From Wallemia ichthyophaga EXF-994 (lineage: Eukaryota; Fungi; Basidiomycota), in assembly GCF_000400465.1 (NCBI RefSeq), contig NW_008806293.1:122601-154600 (forward strand): 32,000 bases of DNA, written 5' to 3'. Under the pieces are notes generated by a model that was not told the DNA's origin, searched no databases, and saw only the letters and a list, made by a program, of their open reading frames with translations. The position numbers and the translations under genes were made by a program. Shown here piece after piece: positions 22,752-31,912 of this stretch; within the stretch, counting starts at the first letter, position 1, and each line of letters opens with the position of its first letter.

Positions 22752-23296
22752 TCAACTAATGTAAACTAATGTATCTATAATCATCCTCCATACTCTATTG
22801 TACTCTGCGTGGGGCTCTGCCGCCATTATCTCGTCCACCGCAGTGCTGAGATTGCAGGGGTGAATGTAGTAGCAGGTAAGGCGGGAAAGTGGGTGGTCAG
22901 TGATGGAAATATACCCGCTGTGTTCTGTGTGCTTGAGTATGCCTTGAGCGATGAGTGTATCGAGTGATCGCAGTGGCTGGCTGTCTATGTACCCATTGAA
23001 GTAGAGCACTGGCACGTTGTATGTTTTCGAGTGAAATATATCCCAAACAACGCTGATTAAAGCTGTGCTGGTGCTTTCGCTAGTTGCTGCATCATCCACC
23101 TCACTAACCCCATTAACCTCGCCCTCAAACTCATCCTCAATCACGTTTCTGCTGTGCGTATTTCCACATGGATAGAACGAGCGTCGACGGAGCCCAGACT
23201 GCTTCACCCACTTTGACTGCGATTCTTCCGTAAGCCTCAATTGATTTAATTCCCCTTTCTGCCCACCTCGCTCCCGATTTCTTCAAAGTCCTCCAT
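22752..23296 (-). CDS. ATG10: Autophagy E2-like conjugating enzyme Atg10 (predicted intron 23217-23266)
   Basis: WDIFHSKTYNVPVLYFNGY and ITDHP..YYIHPC (catalytic Cys). The 10-codon first exon MEDFEEIGSE is joined by a 50-nt GTGGGC..CTTAC..CGCAG intron. Confidence 0.85.
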
Positions 23297-25895: not shown

Positions 25896-28696
25896 ATGTC
25901 AGCGACTGAAGCAGACACATCGTCTTCATCTACGGCAACGTTTTTGTCGGCGTTGGTACTTAACAGTGCCATCGCTGGTGCGCAATTTTTGGCCTTCTGC
26001 CTCTTAAGGCTCAAATTTCCACATATTTACCAGCCACGTGTTACAAAGCCACCTGTAAAGTCTGTATAGTGTTTCTTTGCTTGAGCCCGCTAACTCATCT
26101 CTCAGACACAGAGCCACTGGCCTCACCAAGAGCGTAGTGGGTTGGTTACCGCAGGTATTTAAGGCACCGTATCAGCCTATAGCGAGGCACAACGGCCTTG
26201 ACAGTTTCATGTTCATCAGATACCTTCGCTTGATTGTTAAGATGTTCGTCCCTATGTGGGTCGTGTCCTGGGTTATCTTGTTCCCGGTAAACAGCGCAAA
26301 TTCTGATGGTGGCAAGGATGGTTTGAATATGTTCACGTTCGGTAACATTTCCACTAGCAACCACCCACGTTATGCCGCTAGTTTACTCCTTGCCTGGATT
26401 TTTACTTGTGGGCTGAACTACTGGCAAATTTAGAAAACTGCTCATACACCAAACAGTCTGGATTTTCTACCTCATCAGGTCCGAAATGACTTACTTCATT
26501 AACGCAAGACAACGCTATCTTATCGATAAAGAGCACTCGTCCCTCCCACAGGCCAATACCGTCCTCATTACAGGTGTACCTCAATCGCAGTTGAATAAAG
26601 AAAAGCTCTATGATCTCTTTTCCTACCTTCCTGGCGGTATTAAAGATGTCTGGATTAACCAAGATCTCAGAGAGTTACCAGAGATGCACGAAAATCGTCT
26701 CAACGCCTGCAACAAGCTTGAAGGTGCAGTCACAGCAACTATTAAAACTGCCAAAGACATGGAGCTGAAGCGCGCAAAGGCCGAAAAGAAGGGCAAGCCA
26801 GCTCCAAAGAAGACCATTGTAGAGGATGAGGACTTGGAAAAGGACGACATTGGAGTTGCCGAAAAGCTTATCCCTGCAAAGCAACGCCCAACTCACAAGC
26901 TTGGTTTCATGGGACTGTTTGGAGAGAAGGTTGACACTCTCATATGGTGCAGGGAGGAAATCTCGAGATTGAATGCTGAAATTGGTGATATGCGTAAAGA
27001 GGTCAATTCAGACCCAGAAAAATACAAACCTAAGGGCTCTTGTTTCATTCTTTTCAACCAACAACTCGCAGCACATCTCTGCGCAAAATCATTGATCCAC
27101 CACGCTCCTTACAGAATGGTTGAAAAATACTCCGAGGTCGGCCCAGACGATGTCATTTGGACGAACCTTAACGTTAACCCATACGAGAAACGTCTTAAGT
27201 CTGTCGTCAGCTGGGCAGCTACCATAGCTATTACTATCTTTTTCGCCATCCCAGTCGCATTTGCTGGTGCTGTATCCAACATCAACGCACTTGCTTCTAG
27301 ATACAGCTGGCTGGAGTGGCTAGGAGATCTTCCACAACCGGTCAAGGGTATCATTCAGGGTGCATTTCCACCAGTGCTTGTTGCTATTCTTTTTGCCCTA
27401 GTTCCGATCCTCTTCCGTCTGTTAAGTAAGTTTGAGGGTATTCCACGCTCAACGGCGGTAGAGCTTTCGCTTATGCACCGCTACTTCTTATTCTTGGTAT
27501 TTAACGGTTTCTTGATCACCACTCTCTCTTCTGGTATTATCAGCTCGCTACGTCAACTAACTACAGCCGATGTGACAACTTATCCACAAATCCTTGCAAA
27601 CAACCTTCCAGGTGCCTCCATCTACTTTATCACCTACGTCACCCTTCAAGGTCTTTCTGGATCTTCCGGTGCACTGCTGCAAATAGGTGGATTGGTTGTG
27701 TTCTACATAAAGTCATGGTTCTTGGGATCGACACCACGTTCACGTTGGATGATCTTCAACGCCATGCCTGGTGTCGCATGGGGTACGCTATTCCCACCAA
27801 TGTCTCTCCTGGTCGTCATCACTATTGCGTACTCCATCATTGCACCAATCCTGAACGGCTTTGGTGCCGTCGCCTTTATGCTCTTCTACTTTACCTACAA
27901 ATACAACTTCCTCTACGTATACGATATTAAGCCGGTCTCGGACACGGGTGGGCTGTTTTTCCCAAAGGCGATTCAGCACATTTTCACGGGAATGTACATC
28001 TCGCAAATCTGTTTGGCTGCGCTATTTTTCCTTTCTAAGTACGACGGTAGGCAGGTGGGTATTCCGGAAGGTGTGATCATGGTTGTACTTATCGTGATCA
28101 CAATCGGCTTCCACATAATGATCAACAGCTCATACCAGCCACTCTGCGAAGCGCTACCATTGACGCTGGCATCCAAGACGTGGGGCCAGCAGAGCGATGA
28201 ACAGCCATTGCTTTCTGGACACAACACGGTCGACAGTTCGAACGAGATCAGGGAGTCGAGTGATGGCAGTATGCCACTCTCTGAACTTGGAAAGAGCATG
28301 GGCAAGACGCCATTGGATGAAAAGAAGGAAAAATTGGGAGCGATTGAGGAGGGAGAGGGTGAAAGTAAGGGTGATAAGGGTAGTAAACATAGGGCGCACG
28401 AAGACCAAGACGAAGATCGTACGAGGCATGAAGACGAGGAAGAGGCCAGCACGCCACCACCACCATTCAGTGAGCAGGAGGTCTCGTTCACGCACCCATC
28501 CATGTGCCACCCACAGCAGATCGTTTGGACCGCTAAAGATGAGTACGGCATTTCAGATGAAGTTGTGGAGAAGTGTACTAGAGATAATGTCAACGCAACC
28601 AATGAGCGCGCGTGGATAAATTCAAACGAGAAGGGCAAGCTGGGTAAAATTGAGACACGCGGCTGGCCACCAGGCGAAGACCATAAGTTTGCGTAG
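25896..28696 (+). CDS. CSC1/OSCA/TMEM63 (Rsn1/Phm7, DUF221) calcium-permeable osmo/mechanosensitive channel (~901 aa; introns 26060-26105, 26408-26456)
   Basis: N-terminal TM then IYQPR; GLDSFMFIRYL; RPTHKLGFMGLFGEKVD; GSCFILFN; PDDVIWTNL; multiple TMs; FTYKYNFLYVY..TGGLFFPKAI. Confidence 0.93.
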
Positions 28697-29105: not shown

Positions 29106-31912
29106 ATGTCACTCGAAGCGGCGGGGATTCCTGAAAGGGAAAATGAGGAAGACAGCGGCATCGTGAATCATCAAACAGACAGCACACAGCCATTTACCCA
29201 GATGGACAAACAAGGCGAGATGGCTGAACTAGCACGTCTCTCACAGCGCAATGCTGAATTGCTGCAAGAACCGTTAGGAAAAGTGGATGAAATCCTACTC
29301 AAGTGCCTTGTGAAAGTACAGCAGAATTGCATCCTCGCTCTCAATACTCTCATATTCTCCACTCTTACCGCCATCAAGCCAATCAGCGCCAGCGACTGGA
29401 GGAGCGTAAGTGATAAATACAGCACTTCTAGGAATCTGCATAATCTAAGCCTCAATGTTAATTATGCCTTCGTGACACACTTGAACGCTCCTATTCGTGG
29501 TGATCTAAGTGAGAGAATCGAAAGAATATCCTACCTCTTCTCGCCGATTGATGCGAAACTTGTCGTTGCTTTGGATCAGTTTGCTGATGTTCTTGCCGTT
29601 ATGACTGGTACCGAGGACGAAGTTGACTCTGAGAGTGAATTGGAGAGAGTTCCCTCACGAACATCGTCCCAAAAATACTCCTCCAACTCCTCATCATCAA
29701 ATGAGGTCTACGACACCCTTCAGTCTCAAATGTCTCAGCTAAAGCTAGAGATGCGCACAAATCATCACAAAGAAAACGACATGTGGGTAAAGGTTGAGAC
29801 ATTCATTAACCTCATCAACATACTCTGCATGGAGAGAGAGAACACGAGTGAAATGCCCCCAAGTTATTCGGACCTATCTATGCGCTCCATCCACCGCCAG
29901 CTCTCCAACAAGTCAGTATCCAGCGCCAGCGTAGGGTCAAGCGTCCAGGACGAGAAGATGCGACGTGATTTGGAGAGAGTGACAGATTCCATCGACAGAC
30001 TCATGGGAATCACCCCCCAGCTGGCCGGTCAGAGGGTGGAGCTATCGCAAAAGCAGGTCGTCGAGATGGATTTGGCTAAATTGGCTGGAGAGGTGGAAGC
30101 GTCGGTCAAGACGAGCAAGTCTGAAGCCAGCACGAGCGGGTGTGCGAGTGTGATTGGTAGTGCAAACAAAAGCAAACAGTCAAACAACGGCGTGGGCAAG
30201 TTTTTCCCTAAATCCATCAGTTCGCGCCGCAGTGATAACCAGATAATCAGTGGTATTGAAAAGGCTAATAACCGCAGACTCGACAGTCAGCGCGTCGAAA
30301 TGGGCAGCCGTTTAAAAGATGCTCACACCAAGATGCGCGACGCCGACCTCATCGACATCATTGAGAGAAACAGCATGGGGAGAATGGTGCAACAGGAAAG
30401 TCAGTTTAGTGAGGCCAGCAAGCTGCGCCAGGGAAATAATCCGCGCTCTAGCAGAGGTATGTGGATTTTTTTTTTGTCTTTGACACATCTTTCTAACACT
30501 CTGTTAGACTCCAACGACTCGCAAACACATAGTATGGTATCGCACCAAGCATACCTCGCAGAGCACAACATAAATGTTGGTAATGTGTTAGTGCAGTTCA
30601 AAACTCAACTGCATGGCCAATCCAGGGAGCTTGAAGTAGAGATAGACGAGCAGGACAGAGACACCGCGGTGTTGAAAAACCTATCCAGCTACAACGTCCG
30701 CTTGAACCTGCCTACGGGAGTGGTGTGGCCGCAACACAGGACGGCAAAGCTGGTAGAAAAAGACCTCTTCGAGTTCAACCTGCAAGTGACTCATCAGTCA
30801 AGGAAGTCACTTACAACGCCAGCGGTAGAGCCGCCATCATACCCATTTAGTGCTGTTGACTTTGCCGTGACCAGACCGTCCAGCTTTTGCTGCGCTAAAT
30901 GCGGTCGAGACCTTAGCAGCGGGGAGCTTATCCACAATTACAGAGATCTCCCGTCAGACAATTGGTCTGAGCATGTCGACAACTGGATGTGTCACCCTGC
31001 GCAGGAACTTAACGCGGATTACTACCGTACTTCGCTCAGCGACGCAGCTAGTCCCGATGAGGCCCTCATCGGCAGCAATTATTGGGTCTTCCATAAGAAA
31101 AACATGGTGGAGAGGAGTTTAAAAGTGGAAAGTAATGTGAGTATGGATTCTTGATGTCCCGAAACGGGCGGCCAAGAAGGCCAAGCGGGGCTGTCTCAGA
31201 CACATCCTACCTCGCCTGTTGTCGATACAGCCGCCCAATAGTAATACCCTCGCTGAATACCCGCGGCGTCTCGAGATCCATGTCACGCTGCGGCTACATA
31301 GAGGGGGACATCTGAATGTTTTACTAGAGACATTAACTGACCAACCCCTAAAGGAGCAACAAATAGAGCCGACCCTGAAGTGTGTCTGTGGCAGCACCGT
31401 GGGTAGTGTGCAGGGCGAGGCCTTCTTTCGCCTCAGCAAGGTGGCCGTGAGGCCCATTGCACAGGGCACTGCGTAGGTTTGTTGTGTATGTGTGACTCAT
31501 CTAACACCCGCATAGCTACCACCGCTATAACATCGGCCACTACATCTCCGCAGAGCTTGTCGACCAGTCGCGCAACTATGGCAGCTACCGCTACTTCCTA
31601 CAGGATGAGGATAGTGGTGAACTGAGGCTGCTGGTGTGGCTTTTCAACCCTCTCGTCCGACTGCGCACATCGCAGCTCAGCCTAAATGCCACTGTCGACG
31701 CGTGCAAATTATTCTGGAAGACGAGCAAGGAGGAGCCCTTCCACGACAATCGAATGGGCAAGATACCGAGACTGTCGTACCCTGGTTGGATCCTCGATGA
31801 GTTCGAGAAGTTGCTCATGCACGGCATCGCCTCCTTTCTCGCTGATTCTCCAAGACGTTTCTTCTCCGATTGGCATATAGGATATATCGAGCGCGTGGGC
31901 GTGCCTAAATAA
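29106..31912 (+). CDS. HECT_2 (E2-binding) domain protein, Ipa1/UBE3D-like, with long N-terminal extension (introns 30457-30507, ~31137-31353, 31473-31515)
   Basis: FCCAKC..YRDLPSDNWSEHVDNWMCH, LKCVCG..FRLSK.AVRP and RYFLQDE..LLVWLFNP..WHIGYI match the UBE3D/Ipa1 pattern. The acceptor of the second intron is uncertain. Confidence 0.78.
31161..31313 (+). ncRNA. Intronic box H/ACA guide RNA, predicted snR81-like guide for U2 snRNA Psi42
   Basis: Architecture is hairpin 1 (31166-31236), H box ATAGTA (31238-31243), hairpin 2 (31247-31305), ACA (31308-31310) plus 3 nt. Both pockets lie 14 nt from their box. The 5' pocket strands AAGAA and GATAC are complementary to U2 GUAUC-[U42]G-UUCUU. Confidence 0.78.

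Follow-up and report, generated by a model that had tools for sequence, protein, structure and literature searches.

A predicted box H/ACA RNA with a candidate U2 U42 guide pocket in an intron of Wallemia ichthyophaga

Pseudouridine 42 (Psi42) of yeast U2 aids Prp5-dependent recognition of the branch site. Its guide in Saccharomyces cerevisiae, snR81, is transcribed independently, while the intronic H/ACA RNAs snR191 and snR44 of the same organism are freed by splicing and trimming. The vertebrate RNA SCARNA4 is intron-encoded. snR81 is a two-hairpin H/ACA RNA that guides U2 Psi42 as well as 25S Psi1051/1052, and its 5' pocket leaves U2 U42-G43 unpaired (PMC6049503, PMC7960923). A homology survey of fungal snoRNAs recovered snR81 only in Saccharomyces (PMC5824354), and the uridine equivalent to U42 is guided by snR81 in yeast, by SCARNA4 in vertebrates and by SCARNA15 in non-eutherians (PMC5733568, PMC7960923). 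In SCARNA4 (ACA26) the equivalent U2 Psi41 is guided by the 5' hairpin, which can also rescue yeast snr81-delta; complementarity of the 3' pocket to the branch-site region of U2 is weak and non-canonical, and that pocket was inactive on position 39/40 in a yeast test (PMC5733568). SCARNA15 (ACA45) and the Drosophila scaRNA:PsiU2-38.40.42 each guide several neighbouring uridines in the branch-site region of U2, in some configurations with three unpaired nucleotides (PMC5733568). Fungal snoRNAs are often intronic (PMC3596301), and the snR191/NOG2 intron serves as an expression cassette (PMC5733568).

The window analysed here, a 32,000-nt stretch of DNA whose numbering is used throughout, comes from Wallemia ichthyophaga, a basidiomycete fungus. 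An intron of its HECT_2/UBE3D-like gene probably encodes a box H/ACA RNA of ~148 nt, the first pocket of which is predicted from sequence to guide U2 U42. Like snR81, the element has two hairpins and a 5' pocket predicted to leave U42-G43 unpaired; unlike snR81, it is hosted by an intron, its U2 pairing comprises 10 bp rather than ~14, and its 3' pocket does not match the 25S site (yeast 25S). Intronic location is shared with SCARNA4, as is the layout that we infer for the second pocket, whereas SCARNA4 belongs to the metazoan Cajal-body RNAs, has CAB boxes and gives no Rfam match to the Wallemia element. SCARNA15 and the Drosophila guide are animal RNAs whose activity on U2 has been put to experimental test, whereas the pairing of Wallemia pocket 2 is computational. 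In its arrangement of one sense-strand H/ACA RNA per protein-gene intron the element resembles snR191 (NOG2 intron) and snR44 (RPS22B intron); those RNAs guide rRNA, whereas U2 is the predicted target here, and the Wallemia host is not a ribosome-biogenesis or translation gene.

Rfam, suggested with the original prediction as a check against snR81 and fungal H/ACA models, gave no H/ACA, snR81 or SCARNA match at gathering score in the window or at the seven orthologous loci, and none to the element at E<=10 (31000-31500); sequence or structure homology to snR81 was thus undetectable at this threshold. The only Rfam match, snR76 at 31442-31500 (E=2.6), is at chance level and was discarded. With respect to the snR81 family (Rfam model; snoStrip HACA_26), the element therefore fails to match the covariance model and does show the predicted U2 Psi42 pairing. 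Of the claim that this is an snR81-like guide, the predicted U42 pairing stood, while the family match and the fit of the 3' pocket to the 25S site did not; the term holds for predicted function only.

Host intron and RNA architecture

The element lies entirely within a spliceosomal intron, on the sense strand. The host was assigned by profile to the HECT_2 (UBE3D/Ipa1) family with a score of 150.7 bits, in agreement with the resemblance originally proposed, and its NCBI models comprise 871 aa in W. hederae and 820 aa in W. mellicola. The reading frame extends upstream to an ATG at 29106, across a 51-nt intron (30457-30507). The link of this family to Ysh1/CPSF73 has no bearing on the intron RNA. 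The relevant parts of the gene are as follows.

30534-31136, + strand: host exon 5' of the intron, HECT_2/UBE3D-like
31137-31353, + strand: host intron, 217 nt; GTGAGT at 31137-42, branch site CTGAC at 31337-41, AG at 31352-53
31354-31472 and 31516-31912, + strand: host exons 3' of the intron, separated by a 43-nt intron (31473-31515)

The intron position is common to seven relatives, in which AG|G precedes the conserved exon 2, and the exon junctions of the GTGAGT...CTGAC...AG intron are conserved in all of them. The predicted RNA within it is composed of the following features.

31166-31313, + strand: mature box H/ACA RNA as predicted, ~148 nt with inferred ends, from folds, consensus fold and covariance model
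31166-31172, + strand: 5' arm of the hairpin 1 lower stem, GGGCGGC, 7 bp with GCCGCCC at 31230-31236
31173-31178, + strand: pocket 1 5' strand, CAAGAA; AAGAA predicted to pair with U2 U44-U48 (UUCUU, yeast numbering)
31179-31223, + strand: hairpin 1 upper stem and terminal loop, 11 bp (31179-83 and 31185-90 with 31210-15, 31217-18 and 31221-23)
31224-31229, + strand: pocket 1 3' strand, GATACA; GAUAC predicted to pair with U2 G37-C41 (GUAUC), leaving U42-G43 unpaired
31230-31236, + strand: 3' arm of the hairpin 1 lower stem, GCCGCCC, pairing with GGGCGGC at 31166-72
31238-31243, + strand: H box ATAGTA in the hinge, fitting ANANNA, from sequence
31247-31251, + strand: 5' arm of the hairpin 2 lower stem, CCCTC, pairing with GAGGG at 31301-31305
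31252-31260, + strand: pocket 2 5' strand, GCTGAATAC; candidate pairing of GAAUA with U2 U42-C46
31261-31293, + strand: hairpin 2 upper stem and loop, CCGCGGCGT (31261-69) with ACGCTGCGG (31285-93), loop 31270-84
31294-31300, + strand: pocket 2 3' strand, CTACATA; candidate pairing of CUACAU with U2 G32-G37
31301-31305, + strand: 3' arm of the hairpin 2 lower stem, GAGGG, pairing with CCCTC at 31247-51
31308-31313, + strand: ACA box (31308-10) and 3-nt tail TCT, from sequence

The RNA's 3' end was placed near 31313 on the basis of the ACA+3 rule. The upper stem of hairpin 2 (CCGCGGCGT/ACGCTGCGG) comprises 9 bp including one G-U, and the spacing from upper stem to box is 14 nt for both pockets (31224-37 and 31294-307), identical in all relatives and in keeping with the ~14-16 nt that usually separate a target position from the H or ACA box. 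These results bear out the original prediction closely: the intron was flagged as oversized, and its 217 nt, splice sites and branch site were confirmed, the remaining introns of the gene being 51 and 43 nt long; the coordinates given for hairpins, pockets, H box and ACA hold base for base, as does the 14-nt spacing; and an 85-aa ORF does run across the RNA (31219-31476). Protein databases hold false 'proteins' that run from the host exon into the RNA element.

The minimum-free-energy fold of the W. ichthyophaga element consists of both hairpins, and the same shape was obtained independently in four species (z = -2.2, -4.8, -1.5 and -4.7); the minus strand folds no better than its shuffles (z = -0.64). 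A covariance model of the element found one copy only, on the + strand. The window contains the motif AAGAA..GATAC..ANANNA a single time, for an expectation of 0.09, which is weak by itself; joined with the conservation and covariation in seven orthologues, it places the element far beyond chance. Taken as read from sequence and predicted structure, the element appears to carry all the hallmarks of a eukaryotic box H/ACA RNA, a conclusion that the analysis supports.

Conservation and covariation within Wallemia

The comparison set comprised seven distinct sequences, from W. ichthyophaga, W. hederae, W. mellicola and four Wallemia-like contigs of metagenomes and read archives; no mention of the read-archive accession SRR6399748 was found in the literature. 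The covariation is drawn from one genus throughout, much of it from one clade. Protein searches with HECT_2 for wider orthologues returned Wallemia-like proteins only, and RSN1, the host's neighbour gene, does not adjoin a HECT_2 gene in Phaffia or Ceratobasidium.

The element occupies the corresponding intron of this gene in all seven sequences. The RNA shares 73-88% identity with the relatives, the adjoining exons 62-77% and the remainder of the intron 31-62%, and conservation ends ~3 nt past the ACA box, collapsing outside the element. The original prediction had proposed a search of the orthologous introns for covariation, and this was found: 97.8% of stem cells are paired across the seven sequences, compared with 42-57% when partners are slid, and eight pairs show compensatory change on both sides, compared with 0-2 in the slid controls. 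In W. mellicola, columns 10/76 and 13/73 of the hairpin 1 lower stem are doubly changed (GGGTGGT/ACCACCC) and the hairpin 2 lower stem is compensated (CCCTT/AAGGG). The upper stem of hairpin 1 is paired in 100% of cells, while that of hairpin 2 has three doubly changed pairs (CCGTGATGT/ACATCACGG, CCGTGACGT/ACGTCACGG) and its loop retains CUCNAGA...UGUC.

Both strands of pocket 1 are invariant (7/7), as is the 3' strand of pocket 2, CTACATA; the 5' strand of pocket 2, GCTGAATAC, is invariant apart from a single C>T in the mellicola clade. The H box reads ACAGTA in W. hederae, ACATTA in W. mellicola and A(A/C)AGTG in the relatives L002 and L005, where the last position deviates to G. The ACA box is ACA in W. 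hederae, L002 and L005 and AAA at that site in the mellicola clade; AAA is a natural, accepted alternative (PMC7991803).

Predicted targets and competing readings

The target sequences were yeast U2, 18S, 25S and 5.8S, the 18S (1800 nt) and 25S (3396 nt) having the correct lengths. The U2 target segment used for pocket 1, GUAUCUGUUCUU, is the one conserved between yeast and human. On it, the pairing proposed originally was reproduced, with 5+5 Watson-Crick bp flanking U42-G43. This is the top match of pocket 1 in U2, 18S and 25S combined, and among random 6+6 pockets only 10/20000 (0.05%) equal it on U2 nucleotides 1-60. Ten base pairs lie at the short end for natural guides, snR81 having ~14. 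The minimum measured for snR81 is 8 bp, which pocket 1 exceeds with both flanking pairs intact (PMC6049503).

No canonical pairing of pocket 2 with yeast 18S, 25S, 5.8S or U2 attained 8 bp, and the pocket does not pair at yeast 25S Psi1051/1052. Its perfect complement, TATGTAGTNGTATTCAG, has at least 120 matches in metagenomes, but the scan is uninformative because the contexts are unrelated and none is rRNA-like among the matches listed. Computationally, pocket 2 matches best to the branch-site region of U2, where its pairing would be non-canonical, with 6+5 bp and four unpaired nucleotides, within the same 15-nt U2 segment as pocket 1 (p ~0.015). The configurations with three unpaired nucleotides of SCARNA15 and the Drosophila guide offer a precedent for this pairing at U38 (PMC5733568). 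Both pockets might address one 15-nt U2 region, pocket 1 acting canonically on the equivalent of Psi42 and pocket 2 on that of Psi38 (or Psi40), which would make the RNA a fungal analogue of the U2 scaRNAs that serve several sites in metazoans (SCARNA4, SCARNA15, Drosophila PsiU2-38.40.42). We put this two-pocket arrangement forward tentatively and regard it as rather doubtful.

The complementarity of pocket 1 to U2 could be coincidental in a genuine H/ACA snoRNA whose real targets are Wallemia rRNA or another RNA. Most H/ACA RNAs guide rRNA, pocket 2 is without a canonical target in the RNAs tested, 1.6% of random pockets obtain 10 bp somewhere in U2+18S+25S, and pocket 1 itself has a second match, of 9 bp, at yeast 25S U1686, from which it follows that near-matches arise by chance. 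However, U1686 lies in a variable region of 25S and is not known to be a pseudouridine, whereas the ten Watson-Crick pairs of the top match fall around the exact uridine that is H/ACA-guided in yeast and vertebrates, and the best match of pocket 2 falls nearby in U2. We consider a coincidental match unlikely. That the intron holds a conserved structured element regulating the splicing or expression of the HECT_2 host, rather than a stable H/ACA RNP, is very improbable. Structure and conservation alone are no proof of a stably accumulating RNA, some relatives depart from the consensus at the H and ACA boxes, and Rfam families gave no match, but the canonical spacing at both boxes, the two symmetric internal loops that stay invariant in sequence while the stems covary, and the end of conservation 3 nt past the ACA argue against a splicing element, which needs none of them.

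The exon-2 frame is open through the element in W. ichthyophaga and W. hederae, giving the 85-aa ORF, and use of an acceptor at 31230 would make 31231-31353 code for 41 extra host residues. Such coding use had been named in the original prediction as evidence that would speak against an RNA, and the data contradict it. Within the element, the exon-2 frame has stops in L002 and a frameshift with stops in W. mellicola; on these grounds the 31230 acceptor was rejected. In addition, W. mellicola has AA in place of the AG at 31229-30, the 41-residue insert matches no family and its inclusion makes the HECT_2 score drop from 150.7 to 144.0 bits, and substitutions track base pairs, not codons. A protein-coding role for the element is hardly credible.

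Proposed pathway and significance

By analogy with the biogenesis of known intronic H/ACA RNAs, the guide RNA would be transcribed within the host pre-mRNA, and Cbf5-Nop10-Nhp2(-Gar1) would bind its two hairpins and its H and ACA boxes. Once the intron has been spliced out and debranched, exonucleases would degrade it as far as the protected particle, yielding an RNA from near 31166 to near 31313, 3 nt past the ACA. Judged by its sequence, the 5' pocket (AAGAA and GAUAC) would pair with the segments UUCUU and GUAUC in the part of U2 that recognizes the branch site, and Cbf5 would then isomerize U42 to the conserved pseudouridine. The 3' pocket, equally constrained, may perhaps address U2 U38 or U40 non-canonically, or another Wallemia RNA.

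The element is an unannotated RNA of a well-known type, an expected kind of gene that involves no new mechanism. Only the enlarged intron, in a genome whose introns are very short, brought it to notice. The homology survey concluded that Wallemia has lost ~92% of H/ACA snoRNA families (PMC5824354); the element indicates that at least one guide of the U2-Psi42 type, as predicted, is present in the genus and invisible to homology and Rfam searches. It provides a candidate guide, in a basidiomycete, for a spliceosomal pseudouridine that is among the most conserved. If both pockets do address U2, a dedicated guide for the U2 branch site would be older than the divergence between fungi and animals, and basidiomycete U2 would be modified more like animal than budding-yeast U2. 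The locus also suggests a practical way to track down snoRNAs that seem to be missing from compact fungal genomes, namely to look for introns of outlier length with an internal island of conservation.

The host intron and the structure of the element

The predicted box H/ACA RNA (31166-31313) lies in an intron of a UBE3D-like gene of Wallemia ichthyophaga (Basidiomycota, class Wallemiomycetes), with the following features:

31137-31353, + strand: host intron, 217 nt, with GTGAGT at 31137, branch site CTGAC at 31337-41 and AG at 31352-53
31166-72 with 31230-36, + strand: hairpin 1 lower stem, GGGCGGC with GCCGCCC
31173-78 and 31224-29, + strand: pocket 1 strands, CAAGAA and GATACA, a symmetric internal loop
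31179-90 with 31210-23, + strand: hairpin 1 upper stem, closing this symmetric internal loop
31238-43, + strand: H box ATAGTA, fitting the consensus ANANNA
31247-51 with 31301-05, + strand: hairpin 2 lower stem, CCCTC with GAGGG
31252-60 and 31294-300, + strand: pocket 2 strands, GCUGAAUAC and CUACAUA
31261-69 with 31285-93, + strand: hairpin 2 upper stem, CCGCGGCGT with ACGCTGCGG
31308-10, + strand: ACA box

The sequence agrees exactly with the intron, stem, pocket and box positions of the original prediction, including the distance between upper stem and box, which is exactly 14 nt in both hairpins. The two-hairpin shape is the minimum-free-energy fold of the + strand (z = -1.6 to -2.2), and the - strand folds no better than shuffles. 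The motif AAGAA..GATAC..ANANNA, searched by sequence only, occurs once in the window with 0.09 expected, which is not decisive alone. The element has the structure by which eukaryotic H/ACA guide RNAs are defined.

When spliced, the flanking exons (30534-31136, 31354-31472 and 31516-31912) encode a 372-aa protein matching Pfam HECT_2 (PF09814, UBE3D/Ipa1 family, E = 6.8e-44), bearing out the Ipa1/UBE3D-like host originally proposed. The 217-nt intron is an outlier, since the two others in the gene are only 51 and 43 nt. The host reading frame extends upstream to 29106 via a 51-nt stop-free intron (30457-30507). The upstream 450-aa ORF (29106-30533) matches no Pfam family and shares its reading frame with the HECT_2 part; the NCBI models of W. 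hederae and W. mellicola unite the two in a single 820-871-aa protein. The host may thus be a long UBE3D-like protein with an N-terminal extension.

Several observations concern the neighbourhood. The adjacent RSN1/DUF221 protein (26486-28693) shows 100% identity to a W. ichthyophaga protein, 79% to W. hederae and 77% to W. mellicola. A 50-nt non-coding block just past a stop codon (22759-22808) shares 86% identity with W. mellicola (L004 5025-5074), against only ~70% for the coding DNA beside it, and might represent a conserved 3'-UTR or terminator element. The Rfam model of the C/D snoRNA snR76 gives a weak hit at 31442-31500 (15.3 bits, E = 2.6), which runs from the end of exon 2 into the 43-nt intron and is therefore almost certainly due to chance. 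In two relatives the HECT_2 gene is followed, after a few hundred bases, by a tRNA gene (L003 14644-14735; L005 3768-3868, minus strand); the window itself, which stops 88 nt past the HECT_2 stop codon, contains none according to ARAGORN and Rfam.

Conservation in Wallemia and the coding alternative

Orthologous loci comprised W. hederae (L003), W. mellicola (L004), the Wallemia-like contigs L002, L005, L006 and L009, and a partial L007; L001 is identical to L004 in the element region. The element (144-151 nt) occupies the same intron position in all orthologous loci recovered, in introns of 221-287 nt (the 287 nt of W. hederae being counted to an exon-2 start observed separately in that locus). 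The covariation proposed as a check was found: in a seven-sequence alignment, standard pairs occupy 97.8% of stem cells, versus 42-57% in controls with the 3' partners shifted by 1-3 columns, and 8 pairs are changed on both sides, versus 0-2 in these controls. Compensatory changes affect, for example, the lower stem of hairpin 1 (GGGCGGC/GCCGCCC to GGGTGGT/ACCACCC) and both the upper (CCGCGGCGT/ACGCTGCGG to CCGTGATGT/ACATCACGG and CCGTGACGT/ACGTCACGG) and lower (CCCTC/GAGGG to CCCTT/AAGGG) stems of hairpin 2. In the same alignment a single C>T, seen in the mellicola clade, is the only change in the four pocket strands, and pocket 2 is as strongly conserved as pocket 1.

Identity to the relatives is 73-88% in the RNA, 62-77% in the flanking exons and 31-62% in the remaining intron parts, and conservation ends ~3 nt past the ACA. 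Each orthologue folded separately gives the same shape (z down to -4.8). A covariance model derived from the element alignment and run over 265 kb hits each locus once and has no other match. In L002 and L005 the last base of the H box is G, A(A/C)AGTG. The 3' box is AAA, not ACA, in every mellicola-clade sequence (L001/L004/L006/L009), with AGA two bases upstream; AAA is a recognised natural alternative to ACA in H/ACA RNAs (PMC7991803).

The terminal loop of hairpin 2 (31270-31284) keeps CUCNAGA...UGUC in 7/7 sequences, with a variable middle. Its invariant AG is reminiscent of the metazoan CAB box (ugAG), which directs H/ACA RNAs to Cajal bodies; no evidence for a CAB-box/Cajal-body system in Wallemia was found.

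The original prediction named translation from an acceptor at 31230 as the competing reading. An ORF (31219-31476) does run through the RNA, as the 85-aa misreading noted there, and two database proteins, P0001 (L002 1024-1749) and P0002 (L001 10001-10735), continue from HECT_2 exon 1 into it (...NVS...GWPRRPSGA...); these are annotation artefacts of prokaryote-style gene calling on fungal contigs. The exon-2 frame has two stop codons within the element in L002, and a frameshift plus stops in W. mellicola, where the AG at 31229-30 is AA. With the 41 extra residues, which match no family, the HECT_2 match scores 144.0 bits, lower than the 150.7 bits obtained without them. The broken frames, the lost AG and the lower score rule out coding use of the acceptor, and the element is therefore an intronic RNA. 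It is very probably a real, unannotated, genus-conserved and intron-encoded H/ACA guide.

Predicted targets of the two pockets

In H/ACA pockets the substrate pairs 5' of the target U with the 3' strand of the pocket, and 3' of the next nucleotide with the 5' strand. The target sequences were the conserved yeast/human U2 and yeast rRNAs; the predicted pairing in Wallemia assumes that the U2 branch-site region is conserved across eukaryotes. On this U2, GAUAC (31224-28) complements G37-C41 and AAGAA (31174-78) complements U44-U48, reproducing the proposed 5+5 bp with U42-G43 unpaired (yeast numbering). All 10 pairs are Watson-Crick and both pairs beside the target dinucleotide are intact, where guiding has a measured minimum of 8 bp and flanking pairs matter near that minimum (PMC6049503). 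The site is the top pocket-1 match among these U2, 18S and 25S sequences; random 6+6 pockets equal it on U2 nucleotides 1-60 in 10/20000 cases, and anywhere in the 5.4 kb of U2 and rRNA in 1.6%. From this complementarity, the element probably guides the equivalent of U2 Psi42. The same uridine is served by snR81 in yeast and, in vertebrates, by SCARNA4, plus SCARNA15 outside eutherians (PMC5733568; PMC7960923), and yeast U2 pseudouridines work with Prp5 in branch-site recognition (PMC7960923).

For pocket 2, no canonical target of at least 8 bp was found in yeast 18S, 25S, 5.8S or U2, and a metagenome scan for a perfect complement gave, among the matches listed, only unrelated chance ones. With 2-5 unpaired nucleotides allowed, its best match in all RNAs tested falls once more in the U2 branch-site region, at GUGUAG[UAUC]UGUUC (6+5 bp including two G-U, 4 nt unpaired, U38 the first unpaired base), and is equalled by random guides in 1.3-1.6% of trials. 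Up to four unpaired nucleotides (PMC6049503) and two-pocket guides on this region (PMC5733568) are documented. It is thus conceivable, if rather doubtful, that pocket 2 addresses the region at U38, and both pockets may then act on the same 15 nt of U2; otherwise pocket 2 is an orphan or has a Wallemia-specific target sequence.

Relation to known guide families

The predicted pocket-1 function is like that of snR81 and SCARNA4. The 3' hairpin of snR81, in contrast, guides a 25S site that pocket 2 does not fit, and the suggested Rfam search, covering snR81 and H/ACA models, matched neither the element nor any orthologue. The snR81-like identity therefore holds for the predicted U2 target and not for family membership: the element is not demonstrably a member of the snR81 or SCARNA4 family. 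In fungi other than budding yeast, an intronic position is nothing unusual for a snoRNA (PMC3596301). 'The fungal snoRNAome' reports an apparent loss of 92% of H/ACA families in W. sebi and describes snR81 as Saccharomyces-specific (PMC5824354); the element described here suggests that both the reported Wallemia losses and the restriction of snR81 stem at least partly from what homology search is able to detect.
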